Shown here: piece after piece, positions 239-63,899 of the stretch
How positions within the stretch are numbered: the first letter of the stretch is position 1
Layout of the letters: each line of letters starts with the position of its first letter
NCBI RefSeq assembly: GCF_052425735.1
Contig: NC_135761.1
Span: 14,942,001 to 15,006,000 of the forward strand
Direction: 5' to 3'
Source: Oculina patagonica
Lineage: Eukaryota
Length of the DNA stretch: 64,000 nucleotides
The notes under the pieces: model-generated
Seen by the model: only the letters and a program-made list of their open reading frames with translations
Databases searched by the model: none
Told to the model about the DNA's origin: nothing
Translations under genes and position numbers: made by a program

Positions 239-3200
239 CTTGTACATAAATGCTCTCCAAGGCAAGTGAGCGACAGACTTGAGCTGAGAGCAAAGAACAA
301 GTCAATCAGTAAATAGTAACAAGGCTGAACCTTCAATTTAATGAATGGTGCGGCATGCTTGTGGACATTGACCGTATTCCAACCACCCTGTTTTTGGTCC
401 CTGTTTGAATTTATTTATTTATTTAACATTTCTTTATACACGGTTAAAAATCATCAGGTAAATACTAGTAATTACAGTTATAATAAAAATTAATACAAAT
501 AAATAAATAAATAAAACAAATAAAAATGAATCAATCAGCACTTGTCACCGTTGTGAAAAAATTCTATAAAATTTCTAGATGAATAACTCGGTTTTTAACT
601 CTGTAAAAAACCATAGCTACGCTACGTACGACTAACCTTGTAGTTAACAAACAGCTGAGGCAACATGAACAGAAAACCAAACACATAGACCCCTAAAGAA
701 CGGCAAAAACAGCAACACATAATTATCAAAAATCAACATGACAAGTGTTGTGTATGAATAAAATCACGTAAGAAACATGAATAGAACAAAAAAGTAGAGA
801 GAGATTATCCTTGAAGTTAAAGCAGACTACAAAATACAATAAAAATTAACTATAAAAAGAGACGTTGTAGTCGCGGATATTTTTTAGGGTCTTTAATTTG
901 AATTGCACAAATTTGAAATCTCCTGACTTTACAAGAAAACACGAAGTGTTTTTTAAGTAATGTAACAGTACTTAGCAGATCCATATATGGTCTTGTTAGT
1001 AAAGCGAACCGTTAAAAAATGGCCGAGGGTGCACTTACCATTCACTAAGCTTCGAACAATCCAGGAATACCAACTGCAAGGAAAACAAAGAAACTTGTAA
1101 CGATCATATACATAAAAAGTTACAAGTTCTAGGCTCTGCTAAACAAAGATAAGCGATGTGAACATAAGCTTCATAAGAGTCACCAACCACTTCCAAGTGC
1201 AACAAGAACGACACCACCAAAAGTCTTTTAATATTCGTTTCTTATCATCTTTTTCAGTAATTTTCATCTTTTTTTTTTTCGTGGAGAACATCTTTGGCAG
1301 CAGTAGACTTACAAATCGCGAATATAATAAAGACACGATACATATTATCGTCTCTTAAATGACCTTCATCTTCATAAAACAATTGTTCGTGCAGGTAGAA
1401 CAACACTTAAGAGGTAATAATTTCGATAATAACCCGAAATGAAACAAGGTTTTCATGTGACATGAAAGTTAAAGCGGTCGTTGCAATTGTGAAAGATTGT
1501 TACATTATTGACACCCTTTTGCTTTCGCCTTATTAATTCCTCTACCGCAAATTGCACTCTAGATAGAAGAAATTAACTCTGCGAAAAAATTAAGAAATTA
1601 ACTCTAAAATTAACACTCTCAAGTTTTTAAACTCAGCAGTTTCACGACTGTACATTACCTCTTGTGTGGATGATACACGAGTGAGTATGCAGCACCGGCT
1701 AACAACAAAGGGTATAGGGCGTAGGAAAGGTACCGCATGGCCTGGAGAAAACAAAAATCACACTTACATGTACAGATAGTTTAAACGATAATAAAAATAA
1801 AGAAAACACCAAAAAAGGGACTTTTGCATACCTAAAGGTACCGCTTTCAGGCGAAGCCTTCCCGTATAGGAAGTACCTCCCCCCCCCCCCACCCCCCCCC
1901 CCCCCCCCCCGGCGGACAACTAAGCTCAACTAGACAAATTAAAGTCAAACGTCATCCGTAATGTAGCGTCCTAAAGTTTCAGAAATAAAGTAGAAAAGTG
2001 TTTCCCCTTATGGAATGAATTTTAATCATGGAATCTAGTTTGTATCGCGCTTAACTATCCTGTATATGAAATTCACCCGCCTCTACGTTACCACAATGAC
2101 ATATCCCCGGAAGATACACATCAAATCAGAAGTAAATCATTTTGTTTTATTAGCGTCCTTCTCGTGATTTGCTTTAGCACTACTGTCTGCAAGGAGTAGC
2201 TATTAAATTCCACTCCTCACTCACTGATCGTCGAACGCGAAGAGAGAGTCGCGCGCGCGAACGAACGGACAATGCGCGCGCGGAAAACACGTGATTGGCG
2301 GGCATAAATAATAACGGCCCGTGCTTCTCTGTGGGTAGCTCTATACAATCAGCCAGTAAAACGCTTTAAACTACTTTTTAGTTAGGCCCTTCCGCGCCCT
2401 CAAAAAACCAAATTCAACAAGCAACAGCAAAAGAACTAACAAAGAAAAGAACAAAATTACTTATTACCTCGCTATCAAACTGTTCAGTCTCTTTTTCTTG
2501 GCTTGTCTTTTCTCCAAACTTGAAATGGAAAAAAATAGAGGAGTAAACACAGAAAGAAGACAATTTGGTTAAATCAGAAGCTTATCTGGTAAAATTAAAG
2601 CAAGACAACGTGCATTCCGAGAAAAAAAAACGTTACGCCCGCTACACAGTGGCTGTGTTGCAATTTGGCGAAATGCTGGGGCTGATATAGCAAATGTAAT
2701 AACGAGGTGCAAAATGGTTGTCTTTTAACCTGTATTGTCGGTCTTGCACCTTTTTCCCATTTGATGCTGACTTTGAATGCCTTAGTAACCTTCCACATCT
2801 GTGTAAAACAATTAAATAACAAAGCTAAGTTAGTTAAAAGGTGTGACTTAAAGTCTGTACCCTTAGTGGTGGTGGTGGTGGTAAAATGGGCAAACATAAC
2901 TGACAATGGCTTTTTTATCTAGTTACAACTGTGGGAGGTGCGGTAACCTATTAGTTGGCGTGATGGACTCCAGATTGAACGGTCTAAGTTCCTGCCCTAG
3001 CCAGGGCCAGTGTTGGGCAGGACAGTTTATTCTCAAAGTGCCTCTCTCCACCCAGGTGTGTAAATGAATACATGTACTGGCATTGTGCCAGGGCAACCAA
3101 TCAAAATGCTGGAGGCCAACCTCATTCATGCAGGGGGAGTAGCAATACTGCTAGTCACTTTAATGCTACAAAAACCGAGTGGAAACTTACTTCGATAAGT

Positions 3201-6200
3201 GAGCCAATCCCAGCAGGAATAAGAACGAGAAGACTTGTTTTCTCATCCATTAGATACAAGAAGATTATCAACGTGCTCACACATCGCCAGATAACTGGAA
3301 AGCAACAAATAAAAGAAACAAGATACTGACACTGAAACTGAGTGGCTAAAATAAGAAATGCTGCTATGAAGAGATAAAAGATAAAGACTGTGATCACTGA
3401 AAAGTTTGCCTAAACTAACATCGTTAAGAACTACTTGCAACTGGAACAAAAATCCAAACTTTTTCCCCATTTATTAATACCCTTTACTTTCAAAATTCCA
3501 AGACTCCAAAATTAAGATTAATGTAAATCAATAATTCTTCCAACAACTACCAGGCTATCTCCCCCCCCCCCCCCTTCACATTTATTTGGTTACAGTGATC
3601 ATTAGGCATGTGTTTTTCTACTCCGCCTCAATAATTACCTGTTCGTATAGATAGTCCCACCATACTGTTTCTGCTCTTCCAGTAATTTATATCATTCTTA
3701 AATGCTAAAAAGTCAAACAGAAGCTGCAAAAGAAACCAGGCACTTAGTTAAAAAGAATACTGTAGATGGCCCTGGGCACACCGGGGGGGGTGGGAGGGAG
3801 GGAAGGGAGAGCAGTGGAAACGGAGAGGGAGTGGAGAAATCGGGACCAGCAACTTAGCCCTGCAGATTCCCAGAGGGGGGCAAGGGGGGGGGCATCGGAT
3901 GTTGAGGAGAGGGCCAAAGGGAGGGCAGGGAGGGGCAAACGGAATACGGAACCATGTTTGCAGTTTGAGTATCAAGTACCAGGCACTGTTCGGAACAAAG
4001 ATCGGACTCGAGAGAGCAGAGGAAATCAAGCCTACCTCAACAATTGCCCCTGAAATTTCTAAAACTCTGTGCACCAAATTAAAATTTCCCAATTTGAAAT
4101 AAAGACCAGTTTTTATATTACTTTTTATAGGCATAATTTACTTTTTTATCGATTTTTATCACTCTTACCCCTATCTGAAAATAGGTCCTTAGAAACCCCT
4201 TCTCAATTGCTATCAATTCAAAATTCTCCCTACTGGTTTCCAATATTTTTTTTAAAAATTCCTCAAAGAGAATTTGCCTCTCAATCAAGAATTTTTTTTT
4301 TTTTCCTGAGATGATTAGGTCCTTTACTCAATACTGTTTTGCCTTTATCTACTAAAACTTGTTATAAAGAGGTAAAGAGTTCAATGAGATGATCACTTTG
4401 GGGTTTAAGGTGGCTTAATACAGTTTTGAGAGGGCAAATAAGTCCAACCTTTAACTCTCTTGTACAATCTCCAGAAAAGGTTTGTCTTTCTCTTATCACT
4501 GTTTGTTACATCCTAAAAGAGCGAGTAAACAGCTTAAATGAATGGCCGAGTGCTTAAGAGGGGACTGGCACTAGTAGTTTAAACGGCATTTTTCTCAAAA
4601 TCTACCCGTACGACCCCACCTCAAAATTTCAGAAATAAGAAATTGCCTTTGATTTATCATTCATGCAAAATAAAATAAAAATCTGTAAGACAGATTTTTC
4701 GCAAAATAGGAAAGTGTGATATTTTGCTGATTTTTGAAATAGCTCAAAATTATTCTGTCTTACAGATTTTTTTCAAAATTTTGGCTGTGGACATGGTTCA
4801 CCCCTTAAATTTAATTGTGAAAGTTTCATAATAAGTTGTACGGTAGGTTTTCGAGAAAATCTGGATCAAAATCTGGCTTTAACGACCTCCGAAGCAAATC
4901 AAATTGCGCGTGCAAGCGAGCGCTAATAAGAGACCATACATCGCAAGCGATAATGAAAGACAGAATTAGAACTTCTCTGTCGGTTGTTTATCCACCTTTT
5001 TTGTCATATTGTTTTCCGTCCCAGGTTTCAAGACCTATCTGAAAGTATTTTGAAGTTTTCTTTTGTATACAAATTTGGTAAAGTGCAGTAAAACAGATGG
5101 AACTCTTTTTCATTTCTGTTTAGAGTTGCTAGCGCCATTTTAGCCCACACAAGCAATAATGACCAGTAATGACATCAAGCAGAAAATGTAGCACGTGCCC
5201 TTGAGCCACGTAAAAACTGTATTCAGCCACCTTAAGGAACANNNNNNNNNNNNNNNNNNNNNNNNNNNNNNNNNNNNNNNNNNNNNNNNNNNNNNNNNNN
5301 NNNNNNNNNNNNNNNNNNNNNNNNNNNNNNNNNNNNNNNNNNNNNNNNNNNNNNNNNNNNNNNNNNNNNNNNNNNNNNNNNNNNNNNNNNNNNNNCGAGT
5401 AGACCTCATTGACAATATATTATCAGGGACGGGGGAGCATTTTTTCCAAGTGGGGGGGGGGGGGGGCTGACTAGTCACTTGAAGCGGGGGGGGGGCTTAA
5501 AAGACGCTTCACTTAGTAAGTCTTAATTAATTCGGAAATTCTGGGGGGGGGGGCAAGCCCCCCGGCTCAGCCGTCCCAGCTGTTAAAACATACATGAAGC
5601 ACTGTGATTCCAAATGTGACAGCCAGAAGGAAGAGATTTGTGTCTGTGAAAATTCCTCTCATTTCATCTAAGTCCTTGTCTGAAAATCCTTAAATGCAGA
5701 TTGAACATAACATCGGTTTGTTATATATAATTTAGGCATATACAGCAAAATTGAGTGTACATGTACAGTGCAGCTCAGAAATAAAAGAACCAAAATATAT
5801 GTACATATAATATTTTGCACAACATCGCCACAAAAAAGCAAACAATTAAGCAGTGAATAACAAAGACATGTACATGCATGCATATATGTGTATGTATTCG
5901 CAAAAACACGGATAATCTGCATATGCTTTTTTTTTTTTGCAGTGTTTGCTAATTTCTGATCTGCACAGAAGTTTCAACACACGTATGGCCACAGTATTTA
6001 TTAAGGCCAATGTTAATTCAAACACTGTAGATTTTAATGTGACAGTCTGCCTCCACAATCAGTGGTTATAAAAAGTGAACTTGATCAGAAATTAAAGGTG
6101 CATGATACCATGACAAAGGTTCCATACCTAAATCTTTCATTGACTTGAGTGAATGGTGAACTGATGACCAAATGCGAAGCTTGCCGAGTGATATGGGTGA

Positions 6201-50800: not shown

Positions 50801-53800
50801 AGCAACAATTAATGAAAGTCTGTCCGACCACAATTTTGTTTCGTCCGACCAAGATGGTGTCTTAGTAGGACATATGTCCTTTCAAGTATAAAAAATCATT
50901 TGCAGCCCTGGAAGGGGGGACGGGGGCTTATTAGAGTTTGTTTTTCGATAATCAACGATAGGAAAACCAATCAAATTGGCGTATTTGCAATAAAATACGA
51001 TGAGTGGCTACTAATTAGTTGTTTTGTTCCGGACTTGGACGAATCGGACGAAAACCTCTCTCACATAGAGACCTCTTGACACTCACGCCCATCATATCTA
51101 TCTATCACCACTATACGCTAAACGCTGTGCGATGAGAAGAAAGCTTCCGGCCAATTACACAACATGTAAAGGAAACATTGAATGTTTAAAATAAAACAAA
51201 CCTTTGTTGACTTCAAGGAAGAACGTAAAACACATATTCATTAAAATCTTGGCTGGTTCAAAATCGTCAGCTTGGTTACATCTAAGGAGAAAACGAATAA
51301 GCAATAATAGATTTAACCGAATAGTATTCCTCCATTTATTTGTTTATAATAAGAAAAAAATACGGACCCTTTTTTAGCAAGGGTTCCAATTTTATTCTAA
51401 TTAAAGAACAAAAGATTTCTTTTCAGTGTGACCCATATAAACACCGGTTTCCTACTTTTTCAACTAGAATTTACGCTATGGGAAAATAAAAAGAAAAACT
51501 AATCAATCAAAAAACATACCAGAGAGTCTTAAATCAAAGTATTCAAATATCAATCAATCCTAATTCATTTTAAACACGTTCCAAGAGCTTATCTTGTACA
51601 AATTATTTATTAATGGTCATAAACACATGGTCGCTTCTTTCAAAGAAAAAGTAAATTGTATTCAGTTTTCATTTATAATAGTCATAAAGATCTAACCTTG
51701 ATGTTTCTATAAACGTTCTTCAATTTAACGACAGATCTTAACAGATCATTACGTTTGAAGGTGAGAATGATGTATTAACTAAACGCAGAACTTCATGTTA
51801 GAAAATTGCAAATCCCTAGTGGCTACACACTACAATCTACGATGATAATCCTGAAAATCAGTTTTTGAATTCGAAAAATCCGACCTTTAATTTAAAAAAA
51901 GCAAGACAATTCCAATTGTATATTTTATATATACAATTCTCATAAAACAAACCCGCGTACAAATTCATAAATACCGGTAATGTAATCAAAAATGTATCTT
52001 CTTTACTTAGATTTAATCTGGGGAAAAAACACCAACGATTATGGAAATGGTATGTAAAAAAATGTAAGCGTGCCACAAAGGAATGAATTAAATATACATG
52101 TGTTTTTTTTTTTTTGGATTTCTACATCAGTTTATATATAACGGGCTTCCCAATTAATAATTTGTTCTTTCATTATCACCACTAAAACCATGACTACTAT
52201 TTTGCTACATGTAATTAGCCTCATTTGTGGAGTATTTATTAATAATTAACTAGTTACTACACGCCAAGCAGACAGTTTGTATAGTTGAGCTGTTGGGTGA
52301 AAACATAAACCAGGGTTATTTTCAGTAGCTATTAAAAACACAGTACGATATGAGCCACTTAGGCAAATTAAAGCCCTCGCATTTGTATATTTACGATCGG
52401 TTCAGTCAAGACAAAAAGGAATCGGACGAAAGAAGCATGGCGGATATGGAGGAGCCTCGCCATCCAACTGAATTAACCGAGAATTACAAAATACAGCTTA
52501 AAGATGACGGGCTCGGGAAGTACAAGATAAGTCCGCTAGGCCGTCTTGACGATCCAAAAGAAGTGGTAAGAATCGACTGTCCATTTCTGTTAAGAAATTT
52601 AATGTAGAATTTTTTTATGTTATTTTTTTTTTCACATACCGAGCACAGCTGAAGTAAAATTTTCTTTACTTTGGTTTGCTATGTACTGTACAGACTGTAG
52701 AAGTGCAAATGCCGTTAAAGAAATTCTTATACAGCTAGAAATACGTAAAACAGAATTACTTTTTTTGTTTTATTTATTTTTCAAGTTAGTTTTGAAAAAA
52801 TGTCTCGGCTGTTTTGCACAGAGCCCCCATCAACTTGTTTATCAAAAATAATTCAGTCTGTTGTTTTTCCAAACTGCGTTTTCTTATATATTTTTTTGGC
52901 ACTTCGGCAGTATCGTCTTGCAAATAGTCTCGCGATTTTCTCGTTATTCGTTTCATCTATTGCCATCCTTACTTTAGAAAAACTATTGGATTTCTATAAA
53001 CCATGAACTGTGTGTTTTCATGTTCCGTACCATTAACATAATTTTCCCTGGGCCGTCGAAATTTCAAAAAAATTCAGGTTTTGCGACCATTTAATAGATT
53101 GCTGTTAATGCCACAGTACACATTCAAACAATACTGTTTTGTGATGAATCCTTGAAAAACGTACGTAAAACACCTTGAGGAAGTAAGACATAATATGCAA
53201 GCGTATTTTTAAATGGAGGGAGGAGTGGGTGGGACGTGTTTTGTAACTACATTTTATGTTGTAGTTATATAATTCGGAATGTGGAATTTTTATTAAAATG
53301 CCAAATTCTTTTCCTTTATTTCTGTAGCTGTTATTTGGGCGCTATTAAATGATGCAACGTTCACAGAAGTCAGCTGTGTTTTGTAGTCAGATGTAATCGA
53401 CCTGTAGCCGTTGGGTCCTGTTCATTCTACAACGTTATAATTATTCTAAGATCAGATTATGTTCTTACAAAAGTCATAATTGTCTTTATAGGAAACTGCA
53501 AGAGCAGGCGTTCATACCACAAATGGGGTGAGTGTTAAAGTACTTGCTACTGGTCTTACAGTAAAAGCTAGCTTTGGTCCTCTGTAAATTGCGCTTATCG
53601 TATTGCGGATATATAAGGGTCATTCTGAGCATTTTCAGGATCTAAGGCGCAGCAGAACACTTGAATTTTTCTTGAATGTTCGGACAGTGAGGGAGGGGGG
53701 CGGCCCCGCCCCGCCCCGGCGCGCGGACCAGCCGCCCAACGCCCCCCCGGGCCCCCCCGCCCCGCGCCGGCCCCGGGGTTAATACCAACGTTTGGAACAT

Positions 53801-55934
53801 TTAAACGTAGACAACTAACTTTTTTAAATTCAAACCCATTTTCAGGAAAAGAAGTCTACAAACAGCGTTACAAAGAAAAAGGTAAGACTTAAAAAAACTT
53901 TTTTATAGTCATAAGGTTACAACTTAAGTTTCAACATGGCAGGGAGAGGGGTAGTGGCATTACTGGCAATACTCACTACCCCTCTAGCCACTGTTGACTG
54001 AAAAACTGAATGCATTCATCAACTTTTTCCCCGTTTCCCCACCAACATCAAAAATATTAACAACTGGAACAAATGACATTTAATTTAGTTAAACATGCCA
54101 AGTTATCAGTATCATTACTTTCAATCTAAATTGTATTATTTTGTAGTCCTGGTAAAGCATGTTTAGAAAAAAAATATTACCCGTATAAGAAGAAAAATAT
54201 AGAATTTTAAATATTCATTTATAAGAAACGTAATCCTATGACATTCCTGTCTTGGTTTGATCTTGAAGATGTACAATCATCAGAACATGTAAATTAAATA
54301 ATTTGATCTAAAACTTATATTAAAGGGGAAGTTCACTCCAGAATGGCCATTTATTTTCTTTACGCCAATAGAAAGTTTATACAAAGATACTGTTATTCCC
54401 CTTAAAATTTTAGCCCCCAACGTGCGCTATAAACCCTACGAAATCTTTTCCAAAACTCGACAACTGGACGCCGCCATCTTGGAGCTGGTAATGTATGCGT
54501 GACGTCAACAGAGCTCAGCCTGAAGTTTGGCGGGAAAATTTAAATACTTGAAACTCCTTGTTTCTTCGTAGTGGCTTTTGTTTGTCAAAATGCCTCTTTG
54601 TGTTGTTCGATTTTGCTCAAACGTTAGAGCTCCAAGAAATACAAAAAACAAGGAGTTTTTTCGACCATTAAAATTTTCCCGTCAAACTTCAGGCTGAGCT
54701 CGGTTTGACGTCACGGCTTATACATTACCAGCTCCAAGGATGGCGGCGTTAATAATGAAAAAAACAGGTAAGTTTGTCGAGGTTTGGGAAAGATCTTCGT
54801 AGGGTTACATAGCGAACGTTGGCCGAGGCTGGGGGGTAAAGGCAAAAAAATTTTGGTGAATAACCATATCTTTGTGTAAACGTTTTATTAGCGTAAAGAA
54901 AATAAATGGCCATTCTGGAGTGAACTTCGGTCCTTTTGCATTGTAGCCGTTCATGGGGGAAGTAAACTAAATAAAATAGGTATGCACACTTACTCAAATA
55001 ATTCCCAGAGATGGGGGAAACAATTGCAAAGTACTGAACATGTCTGAAGACGATGGTTTCTGGTACACTCTTGCTGTAGACTCTCTGGTAAAAAATCCAA
55101 TTATCCCACTTTAAATTATTTAATTTTTATTTTAATTTACCTTACTGTCTTTGTTTGTAAATGAACAATTTTCACTTCCGCTTTGCAGCTGGTCTTTATA
55201 GTGGCGCGCCGCGTTTTGTACTGTATAACCATGATGAGTAGCGTGTTGGGCCCGCAATATAATGGTCATTTATTTATTTATTTATTTTGCCACACAAACA
55301 AAAAATATAATTATGAAAAAATAGATAATACAAAATCAATATACAAGATAATAATTAATATACAAGACTACAATATAATAAAAGATTAGAAACAAAATGG
55401 CGAGGGAACCTAATAAAAAACCACGGGGCTTGTAAGCTTAGGTTCCCTCACAAGAAAAACAGATGACTGGTTCAGGTTCTGAAGTAATGACAAGACTAAA
55501 TAGAATACGGAGTGTGTTGGACAAAAGATCAAGCGGTCAGTTGCCTTATCAAAGTTCACAGGGTTTCGGCGTGAAGGAAAAAAATACAAGGAATAAAACC
55601 TTAACATTAACTTTGGTCAAGGAATGTCAGTGGGGCATTCAGACCATAAACAAGAGGCCCTTTTTGTGTGAGGCATTAAAATGTTGTGGGTGCAGGGAGT
55701 CATTAAACCTAAGGAGGGGGACCAAGGTACCAGGGACCCCATGCCCAACCCCTAGATATACCACCGAATGGTATTATATAGCTAGATGTGCACCTTTTAG
55801 TAACACTCAGTGTACACCTATAATGCCTTTGTAGGGAAACCTTTCTCAAAAAAGCTATATACAAGCAGAAGTAACACATTGAATGATAAAAGATACTTTA
55901 CGGCTTGCAGTCTGTGTACCACCCCCCCCCCCCC

Positions 55935-55978
<44 letters not shown>

Positions 55979-58900
55979 ACAGGAATTTGATTTGAATTTA
56001 ATTGGCATTTATAAAATTTACACCATAGCCACCTTGTGCTTTAGCCCTCAAAGTGGACAACGGCCTACTAAACCATCACACTAGTTCAGACTGCACTAAA
56101 AAGAATGATTAAGAAAATTCTGTAATAATTTGAGGCAGCCTTACCTGGTTGTCGACATGTTTGGAGAAGGAAAGGCGCCCAGCACTATGCTGCAAAAAAG
56201 TGTGCAAGATGACAGTATTTTGGCTTTTACAATAAGCAGTATAAACCACTTTTTTTTAGATTCATACTAAATTATTTAAACTTTTAAAAAAACTAATAAC
56301 AAAATAAAAAAAAATACATTTAAAAAAATACATTAACTGCATGGTTAGGTACTGGGGTGTCAACCTTGGTGCAGATCAAACTCAACCTCATCTGAAATAA
56401 TGTTGTGTACACTGTACCTTATTACATAAAATGACGTTAATTTTTTCATTTGCTGATCAGCTGAATGTAATTTACCTGATTAAGGATTCCAAACTTTAGT
56501 TTTTCTTCCTGAGAAATAACACTTCTAAAAGAGTAAATTTGAAAACAGCAGGATTAAAAACAGTTTTAATTCTCTTAAATTATAAACTGCAAGTGTATTA
56601 GGAAAAATATAACAAGCCCTCCAGATTGTGTTATCACCAGGTTCAATAACATTCAGTAAATTCTATCAGTCAGTGAAGTGGAACTTTGGCTTACTGCCAC
56701 CTTATCAATATCACCACACTCAACTTATTAATAACTATGACCACTTTTTTACCCAAGAAATGCTTGATCAGTATGTAATTTGTGGTTCATAATTATAATA
56801 AGAACTGGCAACAACTGAATTTTTTTTATCAATAGTAATAACAGTTGTTAAAATAATATATAGATTTAGGCACGCCTAAAGCGGAGCTCCCCTATTTTTT
56901 CACTGGAGCACAATTTTCATTCAGTGAATAGCGGCCAAAGTACTAATGTTATGGCGGAAGGTGAAGACAAATTAAATAGCTCACGGTACTGAATGTCAGC
57001 AGAACAAATTCTAAAGAAGGGCAAAACATGCCGCCGTCAGAGTACAGTATCCTGCTCAGCAATAATGTTCCGATCTTATAGTTTCGAGAGAGTGACTCCA
57101 CATCACGAGGACCGTGAACAGAGTCTGTCGGAACCCGGTAGGTGCCGGCGCAGATCGGGAGGTCGCGTCACCCCAGAGGGGTTTTTTTTGTTTTTTTTTA
57201 CTACCCCGTTGCATAAAATGTTGTTTTCAACCCGGCGCCATGTCGATGCTGCTACAGTAGACACCAAGTCCGAATGCCCACCATGCGCCTTCACCGTCAG
57301 CCACATTCTGCTTCCTTTCACCCTTCAGGCCGCCTTACGGCCCGCCTTCTTGCTCACCACCACACATGGCGGGGGCGACCCGTAGCCGCGGACGCGCCGC
57401 GACGCCGCTACCTGTTACCGACTGAGATGCGGTTTTCCTGCTTGTGCTTTTCTTTTTTGTGGGGGGGGCCGCCGCGGCCCTGCGGGCCGCTAAGGAGCTC
57501 CGCTATTACTAATATTTAAACTCACTGGAACATTATTTTAATTACATTTACTGATATTGGTAGGTGTACATACTTTGATGACCGACAAAAATTAGAACCT
57601 CAAGCAAATAAATATATTTAGTACCTCATATACGACAACATACTGGCGACTTTACAGCTAGTGTCTAACAGCTAATTAAAATAATACATGTTGAACTGAG
57701 AATTTTAAGTACCCTTAAGCGCACTTCTAAATTCAGCAAGATATCAATCTACAAATAATCCTTTCAAATGAAACCTTTTTCACTAACGTAAACTGTGCCA
57801 GAATTGCAACTTACTCTTTTAGGAATATCTTTGCGACAAAATCTTTCATGAAATCATCACACTCCTGTTCAAACAGCTCTGTTTCCTCATCATAGTCAAC
57901 TTCTGACCCATCTGGTGAAAATATAAACACAGATTAACTCATTACATCTTTGAAAACAATGTCTGAAAACTTCATACATTTGTACTATAAGCCAGGGATT
58001 TTTGCCAAACGTTTCTCAGCTAAATGGTGCCAAACTGCTTAGAGAGTATAATTTCATCCATCATTTGTTCAAAGTATCATAAAAAATATATAATAATAAA
58101 TATGCATTTCAATGTACGTATATATATATACCTTTCTTAGAATTCCTTTTTGACCTAGAATGCCTGCGCTTGTGCATATTTTATCAACCAATAAATACCG
58201 ACTAAACATCAGGGGGAAACTAGGCAAGTTTACAGTTCTTGCTTAAGTTGGAACAAGATATTGGCTTAATTTTATACTGGTAGTTCAAATGGAAATTATG
58301 GTCAAACTTAATTGTTTGGGGATAATTTGAATATATAAACTATTTATAAACACTTTTGTAACAAGTGCTATATAAATAAAAGCTATTGAAATAATTAAAT
58401 GTCAGGCATTAGACATTTTATGGGGTATGTGGCTTAAAAATTAAAAAATCATTTAAATGTGATCAACTCAATAGATAAGATACTCTTGACTTCTGTTGAA
58501 AACCCACATACGACATTTTAACCAAACCAGTTAGAAGCTGGCGTAACTGTTGTCATGACTTCAGTTCATATTTCACAGGAATGCTACCAACACAATCAAT
58601 ATATTTATTGTAATATTGCAAATTATTTCTGTTTACTATTTGGCAAGGTTTAGAATTAGATGAGAATAAAATTATGAAAAATACACCTAGGTGCATGTGT
58701 TGTGGTTAAAATTAATTTTGTTTTTTGTTTAAAATGATAAACCTAGCTGATTTTTGTTTTCCCTTTGTTTTAGATTATGACAAATAGGTGACAAACTTTT
58801 TAAAAGCAAAATTAAAAAGCAAACCATTTCTCTTGTATTTTTTTATGAAGACTAAAAATAAATTTCAATCATTATAAAATGTAGATATTTCAAACTAGTT

Positions 58901-60858
58901 AACATTTTAATATACATGTACATGTAGTTCACCATTAAATTTTCTCCGATTCTGATTGGCTAAAATTGATCACATGATGTAATAGTGTTTGTCTACGGAG
59001 GGCACTATCAGCCCAAAGGGCCCATTTTAGAAAAATACTTACCGGTAAATGGACATAGTATTTGTCCGTGAAATTTTTTTTGTAAACAAGCAGGCCTACA
59101 AACAGAAAAACCCCACTAAATTCACTGCATTTAGTGGGTTTCTTGTTTGGTTTTGTTTCTTTTTTATTATTTCGGCTTTCAATTAGGTCTTTTATCCTAA
59201 AAAGAAAAAAAAATACCTTATTCAAGACGCTTGTTTCTGAATGGGTGCGCAGAAGAAAATTTAGTGGTGAACAATAAAGACAATAGAGTGTTTTTGTCTT
59301 TGAACTATTCGTTTGACAGTTGTCCCTTGGAAATCTGATGTTCTTAAAACTAGCATATTAGCCTTTAAGAACATCAAATTTTTCGCAGGGCAACCATCAG
59401 CCGATAGTTCTTTGAAAGAAACAGGCTATAAATGACATAATTGTTTAAAGAGGTCTGATAGCATACATGTATTGACTGGACAAGAATTATCAAGGGCAAG
59501 GTTTGGGGTATATGGTACATGTATATGTATTGGGGAGTGCCAATAAAGAAATTATGTTACCAATCATTAAGTATTAATAATGGTAATTGAACTGAGTGGA
59601 GTGCAAATTATTTGGTAGAAATCATACGCGTGATTTTTGAAAGAACCCACAGCATGTGTTCAATTTCAAATCACAAGTATGGTTTCAGACCAAAACTGCA
59701 TGGCACAAAGTTCAATTACTCAGCTCAATTAGCTTTTTAGTTATACTGAGTAAAATAACCATTTTTTATATGTTTGAAATGTAAATCTAATTTATTTTTG
59801 TTAATAAAGCATGTGTTTTTGTTGTTGTTATTTATTACTAATACATCCATTTTGAAATTGCACAAGTTTCGGGAAAGTTGCAAATTCTCCACACAGTGGC
59901 TTTCTCTGTCTTTCTTTTTCCTGCATTTGATAGGTTACTTTAAACTAGCCTTGAAATCTGATTGGCTACTTTGTTTTAGTGTCTCTAGCCTTTCTCATTA
60001 GCTGGGAAAAAGATGCGATATATAGCAAAAAAGTGTGATTTGTGAACAAATCCCACTTCTGAGAGCCAATCAGAGTGTATTAAAAGTTCACCAGTGATTT
60101 CAAAATGGTTGTACTGTAATAGTCTTAACCCTTTCATGTGCAAGCGCCATACCGCGCGGACATGACATGTTACATGCGCGACCCTCAAGTAACTCACATG
60201 TGAGCGCATCTGGTGAGAGAGGCTCAGGCGGCGCGAGAAAATTCTGGGGCTTAAAAATGGCAGCACGAGAACCGAGGAGGGAGGACCGTGATGGCGAGAG
60301 GAAGGAAGAGGAGAAATGGAGGAGGAGAGGAAGCCACGAAAACAACCCAGAGACAGGAAGGGGCGGAGGGATCGGCTGCCGACCCAGGTTGCTGCCCCGA
60401 GACAGTGAGAAAGGATCGCTCCCACTGCTGTTTACCACTGTGTTAAAGATGTTCAAAATTGACTGCTATTCTGAGTATTGAGACCAAAAGGGACAGAGGG
60501 AAGTGGTGAGAGAGAAAAAGGACAGTGCGGAAGCCAAAGCGCACATGAAAGGGTTAATATTTTAAATTAACTTTTTTAAGCTTACCGTACAAATTAATTA
60601 GCTAGATTAGCTAGAAGATAATTTGGGGCTGTGGATGTCCAGTATATATAATTTCAAGTTTGAGAACACTGTTATAGGCTGAATTTTTATGCTAGACAAG
60701 GGTAACAACACCATACTTTCTTATCACTGAATATCACAAAATTGTTTATAAAAACATCCACAATATCATTAGATACTAATAAAGATACAAGATGTTTATG
60801 TTTACTTACCGCTGTGATCTGACCATTCCTTCATATCACCCAAAAGATCCACCGTCAT
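47895..60858 (-). CDS. KIAA0513: KIAA0513-like (SBF2-domain related) protein, 11 exons; exon 5 carries an apparent frameshifting insertion
   Basis: Exons (minus): 60858-60810, 57911-57815, 56524-56476, 56189-56145, 55084-54994, 51281-51202, 49881-49824, 49479-49405, 49129-49049, 48218-48124, 47956-47895 (TAG). Motifs FMKDFVAKIF, SQEEKLKFG, CNQADDFEPAKILMNMCFTF, QPIWKSLRFWNAAFFDAVH, TFGKLGTFLSNMKAFGL resemble human KIAA0513. All phases are consistent except exon 5 (91 nt instead of 3n+2). Confidence 0.88.
48733..48930. repeat. Degenerate tandem repeat (CTTACAATACTAACATTA-like)
   Basis: Repeated ACTTACAATAC / ACTAACATTA units. Confidence 0.7.
50683..50910. mobile_element. MITE (CAGGGCTGCA termini), 6-bp TSD
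   Basis: TIR as at 19294; GAAGGG on both sides. Confidence 0.8.
52437..54155 (+). CDS. Putative uncharacterised small protein (~69 aa), 4 exons, nested antisense in KIAA0513 intron 5
   Basis: Exons 52437-52565, 53492-53527, 53846-53881, 54147-54155. The ATGGCG start is in a good context, donors are strong (GTAAGA, GTGAGT, GTAAGA), acceptors are pyrimidine-rich AG, and all junctions are phase 0. ATTAAA at 54293. No family recognised; the last exon is less certain. Confidence 0.62.
54324..54934. mobile_element. Fold-back TTAA-type element with ~270-bp arms
   Basis: GAAGTTCACTCCAGAATGGCCATTTATTTTCTTTACGC mirrored at 54891-54928; the inner arms (GAGCTGGTAATGTA, GAGCTCAGCCTGAAGTTTG) are also mirrored. 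Confidence 0.85.
55922..55976. repeat. poly-C plus (CA)n microsatellite
   Basis: Direct observation. Confidence 0.9.
56880..57504. mobile_element. TIR element (AGCGGAGCTCC) with a GC-rich interior
   Basis: AGCGGAGCTCC at 56880 and GGAGCTCCGCT at 57494. Confidence 0.55.
60129..60553. mobile_element. piggyBac-like MITE (TTAA TSD, CCC termini) with a purine-rich interior
   Basis: TTAA-CCCTTTCATGTGC ... GCACATGAAAGGG-TTAA. Confidence 0.75.
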
Positions 60859-61152
60859 AGTAAACGCAGTATCATTGCTACCTCATTGCTAGAGGACGCC
60901 GAAAAAACAAAAAATACCAAAAGAAAACACAAAGAAAAGCGGAAATCGGCCTTTGTTGCGGAAATACCTTTGAGTTCTTTTGTATCCAGTCCCCTCCCGC
61001 CGCGGGAAAAACATGCTCTATTGTCCGATGCGCATTTTACAAATATCTAAACAGCTGCCCTTTTAACGAGGGCTCAGATAAACTCCCATCACGCATAGCG
61101 GCTCCGTTCCGTGGCAACGTCGCAGAAAAACAAGTGCAAAGAAGAAGGGAAA
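60859..61152. promoter_or_regulatory. Putative bidirectional promoter KIAA0513 / DYNLRB with RFX X-box
   Basis: 294 bp between divergent ATGs. GTTCCGTGGCAAC at 61106-61118 resembles the RFX X-box; E2F-like GCGGGAAA at 61002. Confidence 0.6.
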
Positions 61153-63899
61153 ATGGTGGGCATTTTAGTTGACTTTTTCATATTTTGACTCTTTGGTGGT
61201 CTTGTCTAAATACGATATTTCCTTTTTTTACAGTCTGAAGTCGAGGAATCACTGAAAAGAATCCAGGGCCATAAGGGCGTTATAGGAATAATCGTCGTCA
61301 ACAGTGAAGGTATGAAGGTCAACAACAGTTTCTTGCATTTGAAACAATGATGCGAACTGCCGCCAGAATGAAGGCGTTTCCAAAGGGTTAGTTCATTTAC
61401 TGGATGCTCATTCTGGTCCACGTTTCTTTCTTGTTGTAGGCATTCCTATAAGAACGACCATGGATAACTCGACGACTGTTCAGTACGCTGGATTAATTCA
61501 TCAGTTGACATCTAAAGCTCGAAGCACAGTTCGAGACATCGATCCACAGGTAAACGAATTCAAACATTATATCGTTATTTTAATATGTTAGGAAAGCAAG
61601 GAAACCTTTGGGCGTACATTTTTGTTTCAATCGCATAAGAGTGATTCGCAAAATCTTTACAACATGATATTTGCGGTGACTGTCTCAATTTAAATCCACT
61701 CACCCTCGTGTATAAGGCTTTCCCTGTCAGAGCAGATCCCGATGTTGTGTCAACGTCTTTTAATCTTTATATGACCATTTTCTGACAGGGAATTGTGGAT
61801 TTATTTTAGATTTCAAAGTCCTGCTAAAAAATTCATAGAAAGAGGTTCAAGTGTGATGTTACATACAATGTACATGAGTCTAGTATAAAGTACCCTGGTT
61901 GCCAGAAGTTGTTTTGCTTCTTTTATACAAGGAGCAGTGAACAGTATGCTTCAAAAGCAAGTGACATGAATGGAGAAGGGCAATTTTCCCCACTTTGACT
62001 TGTTTATGCAGTTTTGCCGCTCATAGTTTAGACAATACCCTGAAATACCGAGAATTATATGTGCAGTAGTACATGTAGGTTATTTGTTAATTATGCTCTT
62101 TCTAGCCCTTTTAATACATTATCTGTGAAAGGTTCTGGCAAGACCTTATTAATACAGCAAATCCATGCTTGAATGTTTTTCATAAAGGCAAAAGGATAGT
62201 GTAACAAAAACAGAGGTGGAATCATGGAATGGCGACTGTGAACATTTCTAGAAAATGAATGGGTTATGAAATCCTTTAGCTTGATGTCAAATACCCAACC
62301 TGGCACTCAAAGTTTTGCATCAAATTCCCCAATAATTATACGGAGCTACACGTAACCTCAAGTCAAATGCCCGAAGGTGCCCTTGGGGGGGTGGGCGCTC
62401 TTGAATGTGACTGATGCATTACTGAAATATGGACTCCCATGCAAATTTTGGGGAAAACTATTGTTCAAAGTACATTCATAAAGAGTTATTCTTGTTAAAA
62501 GACATGATCTGTTGGTGTAAGTTTAAAGGGACTATGTCACGACTAATTTAATTTTATGTTATAAAATTTTGTCAAATATTCGCTATGAAACTAAATGTTT
62601 GCAAAGAAATTAATTCTATGATTCTAAATGAAAAAACATAGCTTCATTGCAGTCAAATGTGTCTCCCGGGCGTTATAATTTTAAGTTACAAGCAGACAAG
62701 ATTAACTTTGAAAAATGTTCCGCCGGACCATATTTCAAAAACCCATATCGCAATCCGTTTCAATCTTCGTCGCTTTTGGCCATCCTTGCCTTCTTTTGTA
62801 TTTGCTGTGTTATTTAAATGTTCCTTCACTGATTTAAGAGTTTATTTTGTATATTTAAACAAATCTGATGGTCATTTCCTATGCCTAAGTTTTGCTTAAA
62901 TCTGTGACACGGTCCCTTTAAGTGAATTTTGCAGCAAGATGTCCCAGTTGCTTCAGTGATATTATTCCTTTCTTTTTTCAGAATGATTTAACATTCCTCA
63001 GGGTCCGTTCTAAGAAACATGAAATTCTGGTTGCTCCTGGTAAGTTCCATTTTATAATATAGTTATAAAAGAGGCCAAAAATATTTAGTTAATACAAACC
63101 TATTTTGGTGATTGTGATAATAGTGAGCTTTTAATGAGAGATTACCTACCAAAAAGGAGGCATGGCATGTCTATGTTGTGGTTTATATTTATCTTTGGTT
63201 TAAAACAATTATTTTAACCAGTCTGATTTTTATTTTTTATTGTCTCATATTTATTATCATAATCTGTCATTAATAATGGAGAAGAAAAATAAAACCGGTT
63301 GAAAAAATTTAGACCAAGGATAAATTTAAACCACAACATACATTTACATGTAGGCTACATATAAATTCTGCTCATAAATTTGACAACAATTTATTGTGCC
63401 TATGGGCAGTGCTACGATTCTGCTCATAATTCTCCAATATTTCAGAAACAATACAACACTCTATTGCAATTTTCATTATTCATAAACAATGCTACCGGTT
63501 GCAGTGTGTAAGTTATTTTGTTTATTTATTGGTGGACATTGAATTGGGTTTTTCTTTTTTTTGTAAATTATTTATATATTTTTTACTTCATCACTTTTTG
63601 GTTTTTAAATATAAATTTTATGATTATTTTGCCTATACAGTTTCTGCCCAAAAATTCCTTATTCTGCTCGAAAAAATAATGGTTACTGCCACAAACAGCC
63701 AAAATGGCCTTTGATATTCTGCCAGAATTCATCCAAGCCTAATAAAAACAATAAAAACAACTAGTTAGTGTCAGAACTGAACTGAAACTACAAATGTAAA
63801 TTTCAAAACCTGAGTGTTGCCTTACTTCTTTTTTTTTTTTTTTTTTGCATTTCAGATAAAGAGTACCTGATGATCGTTATTCAAAATCCAAGCCAGTAG
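61153..63899 (+). CDS. DYNLRB2: Dynein light chain roadblock-type (96 aa), 5 exons
   Basis: Exons 61153-61155 (ATG only), 61234-61309, 61440-61549, 62982-63039, 63856-63899 (TAG). Protein [44 protein letters not shown]...[26 protein letters not shown]. Co-ortholog of DYNLRB1/2. Confidence 0.96.
62527..62917. mobile_element. Non-autonomous TTAA-target element (Kolobok-like)
   Basis: TTAA-AGGGACTATGTCAC ... GTGACACGGTCCCT-TTAA. Confidence 0.72.
63174..63339. mobile_element. Palindromic GTTGTGGTT-family MITE without a GC insert
   Basis: ATGTTGTGGTTTATATTTATCTTTGGT ... ACCAAGGATAAATTTAAACCACAACAT. Confidence 0.75.

Follow-up and report, generated by a model that had tools for sequence, protein, structure and literature searches.

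Three exons in an intron of a KIAA0513-like gene of the coral Oculina patagonica are probably distal 5' coding exons of a dynein roadblock light chain gene

We analyzed a 64,000-nucleotide stretch of the genome of the coral Oculina patagonica (RefSeq assembly GCF_052425735.1, contig NC_135761.1, positions 14,942,001 to 15,006,000 of the forward strand), here called the window, with positions counted from its first letter. Within it lie three plus-strand exons that an original prediction, made from the letters alone, had presented together with a fourth as a hidden microprotein gene nested antisense in an intron of KIAA0513. We propose that exons 1-3 form the coding part of an alternative, distal 5' end of the DYNLRB gene, which encodes the dynein light chain roadblock/LC7, and put the probability of this reading at roughly 0.85. 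The splice junctions, the reading frame, the conservation of protein and gene order from stony corals to sea anemones and the purifying selection that support it were all observed directly.

Results

The four segments of the original prediction join to give exactly the 69-aa peptide that it quoted, with AG/GT dinucleotides at every boundary, donors reading GTAAGA, GTGAGT and GTAAGA, and pyrimidine-rich acceptors. Contigs of four RNA runs from four studies were placed on positions 51000-55200. The predicted GT-AG sites of exons 1-3 (52437-52565, 53492-53527 and 53846-53881) are present, and both joints occur on the plus strand in coral RNA contigs, 52565 to 53492 in run X8 and 53527 to 53846 in runs X8 and X7; exon 1 itself is present in many coral RNA runs. 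Past exon 3, the X8 and X7 contigs exit at 53881 and continue for at least 255 nt absent from 51000-55200. The first 30 nt after 53881 have a single exact match in the window, at 61234-61263 on the plus strand. In both runs, the exon-3 donor is joined to an exon that begins at 61234, beyond the KIAA0513 intron and 7.35 kb farther downstream. Neither skipping of the 36-nt exons nor transcriptional interference with the host, both raised as possibilities in the original prediction, was seen in this analysis.

No joint from 53881 to 54147, where the predicted fourth exon (SW and a stop) would begin, occurred in any of the four RNA runs. A 9-nt terminal exon is almost information-free, because 28 of the 57 AG dinucleotides in 53882-54993 give an in-frame stop within 10 codons, and no motif equivalent to this exon was found downstream of Orbicella exon 3. 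The 69-aa stand-alone model was rejected, since the RNA joints lead elsewhere and its tail is unconserved. Intron coverage is low and even in runs X1 and X7 and represents unspliced RNA or library DNA, so that coverage alone says little here.

The frame of exons 1-3 stays open through the four exons from 61234 to a TAG at 63897, all with AG/GT sites. The coding sequence is 489 nt long from 52437, and the protein is 191 aa long when started at 52350, comprising a 96-aa N-terminal extension and a 95-aa Roadblock/LC7 dynein light chain part that aligns along its whole length with coral roadblock dynein light chains. Membership in the Robl_LC7 family (PF03259) is evident within the window, where 61234-61308 matches profile positions 2-24 (15.2 bits) and 61442-61549 matches positions 26-60 (22.3 bits). 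Database searches for the 191-aa protein were run with orthologue sequences in place of the spliced window protein; full-length orthologues, aligned with it along the whole length, score 82-83 bits against a Pfam cut-off of 23. P0037, the short form of Stylophora, is closely related to the window domain, as it shares a 90%-identity cluster with a coral roadblock protein aligned to the window product (P0030); it matches solved chains of human DYNLRB2 and DYNLRB1 across residues 1-95 with E-values of 1.7e-47 to 8.9e-41. Because exon 3 splices in frame to roadblock/LC7 exons, the protein as a whole is a member of a family that is very well known, and the idea of a stand-alone microprotein, which would need a supported stop of its own, does not hold.

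The features of the locus are as follows.

52220..52349, plus strand: likely 5' leader of the distal first exon; the X8 contig over exon 1 begins at 52220.
52350..52565, plus strand: coding part of distal exon 1, 72 aa, with motifs KLKPSHLYIYDR and LKDDGLGKYKISPLG; supported by homologues, and its donor GTAAGA at 52566 is used in X8.
53492..53527, plus strand: exon 2, 36 nt, phase 0, 12 aa; RNA joints, and present in Orbicella, Pocillopora and Nematostella models.
53846..53881, plus strand: exon 3, 36 nt, phase 0, 12 aa ending in TKKK; RNA joints, with the donor at 53882 spliced to 61234.
53882..61233, plus strand: 7.35-kb intron of the long isoform; the contig passes from 53881 to 61234. Inside it are the first coding exons of the host (minus strand), the promoter region of the host and the proximal first exon of roadblock.
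54147..54155, plus strand: predicted fourth exon (SW and a stop), unsupported; it occurs only in the Oculina patagonica GenBank model KAL9975365.1.
61153..61155, plus strand: start codon (ATG) of the proximal (canonical) first exon of roadblock; a GT donor (GTGGGC) and a 78-nt intron come directly after it.
61234..61309, plus strand: shared roadblock exon, RNA-joined to exon 3; exact 30-nt match, Robl_LC7 positions 2-24.
61440..61549, plus strand: roadblock exon; AG/GT sites and frame, Robl_LC7 positions 26-60 at 22.3 bits.
62982..63039, plus strand: roadblock exon; AG/GT sites and frame, aligning with coral long forms.
63856..63899, plus strand: last coding exon, stop TAG at 63897-63899; its C-terminus aligns to coral roadblock P0030.
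51182..51281, minus strand: exon of the host (KIAA0513-like, SBF2-domain) bordering the intron that holds exons 1-3; host joint 51281 to 54994 in all four runs, with 94% protein-level identity to Orbicella.

The roadblock gene is also predicted to have an ordinary 5' end. The proximal ATG at 61153 and the short intron after it are ~90% identical to Orbicella, whose Robl gene call (96 aa) has its start at the corresponding ATG, and the Stylophora short protein begins MSEVEE. The gene would therefore have an ordinary proximal first exon, and exons 1-3 form an alternative 5' end 9 kb upstream. As read from the genome, the proximal exon is predicted to give the ordinary ~96-aa roadblock protein (M + SEVEE...). 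A third annotated isoform in Stylophora (P0041, XP_022803007.1, 124 aa) begins just before exon 2 (ME-L-ETARAG...), which hints at further alternative first exons of the roadblock gene in pocilloporids.

For the long form, the in-frame ATG at 52350, mentioned in the original prediction as a possible addition, proved to be the conserved start. When the open frame around exon 1 served as the query, 28 coral proteins were recovered that cover all 72 residues from this ATG at 54-90% identity, most of the exon-1 matches being genomic ORFs that run on into the intron. A start at 52437 was rejected, as conservation begins at 52350 and the Met at 52437 is internal and unconserved. Contigs begin near exon 1 at 52220 in X8, 52316 in X1 and 52326 in X14. 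An in-frame stop lies immediately before 52329, there is no upstream ATG in 52210-52349, and the 150 nt upstream are 75% identical to Orbicella, compared with 60-67% in the flanking intron.

Fused proteins that combine the N-terminal extension with Robl_LC7 are annotated in Pocillopora meandrina, P. damicornis and P. verrucosa (XP_027047594.1 and XP_058959633.1 within the genus), Stylophora pistillata isoform X1 (XP_022803002.1), Desmophyllum pertusum, Montipora capricornis and Acropora palmata. They also stand in the sea anemones Actinostola, Exaiptasia and Nematostella vectensis, the last under the name dynein light chain roadblock-type 2 (XP_032230563.1). The spliced product of a pocilloporid Logan contig (P0046) has the same fused architecture. 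These orthologous hexacoral long forms have in common with the window the motifs, the microexon-encoded segment and the junction between TKKK and SEVEE, which is identical in nearly all of them. Exons 2 and 3 are nearly unchanged in spliced models of Orbicella and Pocillopora damicornis, and the EKKSxNSxTKKK segment is kept as far as Nematostella. One homologue (P0035) has exon 1 and a possible exon 3, with no roadblock exons found within 10 kb, and an exact look-up of the Acropora and Exaiptasia long forms among recorded contigs found none. An exhaustive phmmer search returned eight representatives, and every match with a source name came from a stony coral or sea anemone. The suggestion of a lineage-restricted sequence is thus borne out for the extension, whose named sources are all hexacorals, the group that comprises stony corals and sea anemones.

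Compared with Orbicella, exons 1-3 of the window have a dN of 0.09, a dS of 0.44 and a dN/dS of 0.21, the ratio that the original prediction had named as a check. Their nucleotide identity is 86%, against 60-67% in the flanking introns. The low dN/dS and the excess of exon over intron identity therefore indicate a coding sequence under purifying selection, and ~50 homologues are free of frameshifts and stops. Nine columns are invariant across 18 aligned sequences. In the alignment, the near-invariant islands KLKPSHLYIYDR and LKDDGLGKYKISPLG are separated by a variable acidic linker and followed by the EKKSxNSxTKKK segment.

No Pfam family was found for the extension, whether with the homologues P0007 and P0051 or with window exon 1; P0036 gave nothing above threshold, and its weaker Pfam matches fall in part on its intron read-through tail. 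A PDB profile search with the extension found no relative (best E 0.64), and look-alikes in the ESM Atlas (glyoxalase-like, feature score at most 0.83, TM at most 0.41) were rejected as chance level. The original remark that no family was recognised thus stands for the extension (Pfam, PDB) and fails for the complete protein, whose C-terminal part is Roadblock/LC7. In an AF2 model of the long form based on a 13-sequence alignment, residues 1-95 have pLDDT below 50 except for a weak hairpin at 47-63 over LKDDGLGKYKIS, and in the AF2 monomer the roadblock part folds at a pLDDT of only ~70-79. The extension is probably disordered, as judged from these models.

Exons 1-3 are plus-strand, spliced, protein-coding and antisense to a KIAA0513-like host, as had been predicted. 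The further claim that the gene lies wholly within KIAA0513 intron 5 (51282-54993) has to be revised, since its coding exons reach 63899 and the transcript, which continues at least that far, spans the first host coding exons and the host promoter. Five host coding blocks conserved with Orbicella (~55017-55099, 56142-56216, 56473-56526, 57814-57933 and 60805-60860) fall in the 7.35-kb intron, intron 3 of the long isoform. The gene is therefore interleaved antisense with its neighbor and is not a nested gene, all exons of which would lie in a single host intron. In Orbicella, the upstream exons likewise lie inside a minus-strand SBF2-domain (KIAA0513-like) gene, with roadblock just past the 5' end of that gene and an MFS transporter flanking it on the opposite side, the same gene order as in the window. 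In Nematostella, a 182-aa gene of 7 kb shows the same kind of overlap with the SBF2 gene, and its exon plan is that of the window (62 aa, microexons of 12 and 13 aa, then roadblock exons). The placement of exons 1-3 inside an opposite-strand KIAA0513-like gene is thus common to Orbicella and Nematostella, in both of which the host-strand gene call has a weak PF12335 SBF2 match.

Three further observations concern the host. Its start codon near 60860 (minus strand) and the proximal roadblock ATG at 61153 (plus strand) stand head to head ~300 nt apart, and 60860-61155 is probably a shared bidirectional promoter, conserved with Orbicella. Upstream of distal exon 1, intronic stretches in 51515-52167 show DNA-level conservation with Orbicella and are candidate regulatory sequence of the distal promoter. 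On the host strand, all four RNA runs join 51281 to 54994-55000 and then 55018, so that 17 nt of the assembly (55001-55017) are missing from the RNA, which suggests a misassembly, or an allele unique to the individual that was sequenced, and not a broken gene.

The locus is already present, in pieces, in public annotation. GenBank KAL9975365.1 (Oculina patagonica, 69 aa) is identical letter for letter to the originally predicted peptide, and RefSeq XP_078367674.1 (Oculina patagonica, 104 aa) covers exons 1-3 from 52350 and then reads through into the intron for eight codons. The gene is hence neither hidden nor, as a model, undescribed, given that both short models are public for this species and fused forms stand in RefSeq for several others. 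Protein searches able to show a long Oculina form returned none, and we found no description of the long cnidarian roadblock form in the literature.

With respect to isoform abundance, an X8 contig of mean depth 693 begins at the end of exon 1, covers exons 2-3 and continues into the shared roadblock exons, and its depth is presumably dominated by the shared roadblock part. We infer that an assembler would trim the short proximal exon as a tip, and the path of the contig is for that reason silent on first-exon preference. The depths suggest that the long form is minor, with the proviso that contig depth is a poor measure of abundance.

Two unusual elements occur in the introns of the locus. 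A ~100-nt block of at least 80% G+C lies at 53674-53793 inside a 37% G+C intron; an X1 contig spanning it omits exactly 53678-53777, so that the block is absent from that sample, and either an insertion polymorphism or an artefact of assembly could account for it. Only one other such G+C-rich block occurs in the window, at 1856-1916. At 54243-54947 lies a high-copy element with summed RNA-contig depths of 700-5000 in all four runs, where many contigs fit two places of the stretch and an opposite-strand joint connects 54563 and 54602. The element is probably a repeat that is dispersed and expressed, present here as two partial copies.

Discussion

We propose that a second promoter, ~9 kb upstream of the ordinary roadblock promoter and within an intron of the opposite-strand KIAA0513-like gene, would drive a distal transcript translated from 52350. 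Exons 1-3 (72, 12 and 12 codons, all phase 0) would be spliced over 7.35 kb onto the shared exon at 61234, thereby removing an intron that takes in the host's first coding exons together with the head-to-head promoter region and the proximal first exon, which consists of an ATG only. The product would carry a 96-aa, probably disordered tail that contains a pair of short invariant motifs and ends in a basic TKKK, in front of an unchanged Roadblock/LC7 domain, while the proximal first exon would supply the ordinary ~96-aa roadblock. The tail could present short binding motifs on dynein-bound roadblock and thereby recruit or regulate a partner, and the long form might be a minor or cell-type-restricted isoform.

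Several points weigh against the assignment of exons 1-3 to the roadblock gene. The 53881 to 61234 joint occurs in contigs of only two of the four runs, and contigs yield no isoform ratios. In X8, the exon 1 contig has a depth of 12.5, compared with 693 for the contig that reaches into the shared roadblock exons. RefSeq carries the upstream exons as separate short genes in both Oculina patagonica (104 aa) and Orbicella (105 aa, LOC110051660). The RNA runs differ within exons 1-3 at four sites, two synonymous and two non-synonymous, too few to speak to short-range constraint, and a comparison of short-range polymorphism between exons and introns was set aside as uninformative on this account. 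Finally, we infer both the translation of the extension and its separate transcription start site, and use of the proximal first exon in this species is predicted from sequence.

A more specific interpretation, which we regard as unlikely, is that the extension, with its two invariant short motifs and a basic patch, is a hexacoral-specific adaptor tail that tethers a partner to dynein or axonemal dynein via roadblock in a specific cell type. Its promoter would have been kept in the KIAA0513-like gene since before the split of stony corals and sea anemones. Production of the long form requires antisense transcription through the first host coding exons and the shared head-to-head promoter, which could make long roadblock, short roadblock and KIAA0513 mutually exclusive in expression.

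Alternatively, an independent small-protein gene might reside in the KIAA0513 intron, ending either in SW after 69 aa or by intron read-through after 104 aa, with the roadblock joints as functionless read-through or conjoined transcripts. The short models KAL9975365.1, XP_078367674.1 and Orbicella LOC110051660 are what such a gene would look like, and low RNA contig coverage does go on past exon 3 (X8 depth 2-5). That coverage, however, equals ordinary intron coverage, and the joint to 54147 is missing. The tails after exon 3 (SW, VRLKKTFL and VRLSCNLFG) are unconserved, the last two being the translated donor site, and a conserved terminal exon was not found in Orbicella. The in-frame phase-0 junction with roadblock, by contrast, is retained between stony corals and sea anemones. 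We consider an independent small gene quite improbable. That the exons are a non-coding 5' UTR or antisense long non-coding RNA with a frame open by chance is scarcely credible: although the extension has no known domain, is predicted to be disordered and belongs to a seemingly minor isoform, a dN/dS of 0.21, invariant residues across the 18 aligned sequences and ~50 homologues that lack frameshifts and stops and conserve the frame into roadblock all argue against it.

As distal exons of a roadblock gene, exons 1-3 belong to a protein whose C-terminal 95 aa form a complete Roadblock/LC7 domain like that of DYNLRB1/2, Drosophila robl and Chlamydomonas LC7 (PF03259). Conservation extends to the ATG-only first exon and to the short product of ~96 aa, as in DYNLRB-type genes. 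Unlike mammalian, fly and Chlamydomonas PDB chains, which comprise 96-106 aa and have no extension, the coral long isoform has a 96-aa extension from three extra upstream exons. A parallel in arrangement is ciliate axonemal LC7B (PDB 7kek chain G, 159 aa, Robl domain 57-151), a roadblock chain with an extra N-terminal segment of ~55 aa that is built into solved axonemal dynein complexes. This protein comes from a different lineage, and the likeness drawn here is one of arrangement. Exons 1-3 also resemble nested intronic genes and small open reading frames in that they lie antisense in a host intron and would encode fewer than 100 aa alone. Unlike a small open reading frame, with its own stop and transcript end and at most 100 aa, their frame continues from 53881 into 61234, the alternative tails are unconserved, and the transcript extends beyond the intron, across the first coding exons of the host.

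The immediate consequence is a correction of gene models. Two public Oculina patagonica annotations, unlike those of several other hexacorals, split the upstream exons off as orphan short genes, and the RNA joints favor the fused model; together with the comparative data, they make the upstream exons part of the roadblock gene. No new kind of gene or mechanism is involved. Our analysis describes a dynein roadblock light chain of hexacorals that is conserved and bears an N-terminal extension, probably expressed from a distal promoter that is interleaved antisense with a neighboring gene, in an arrangement common to stony corals and the sea anemone Nematostella. The two invariant motifs of the extension provide concrete experimental handles on this form of the protein.

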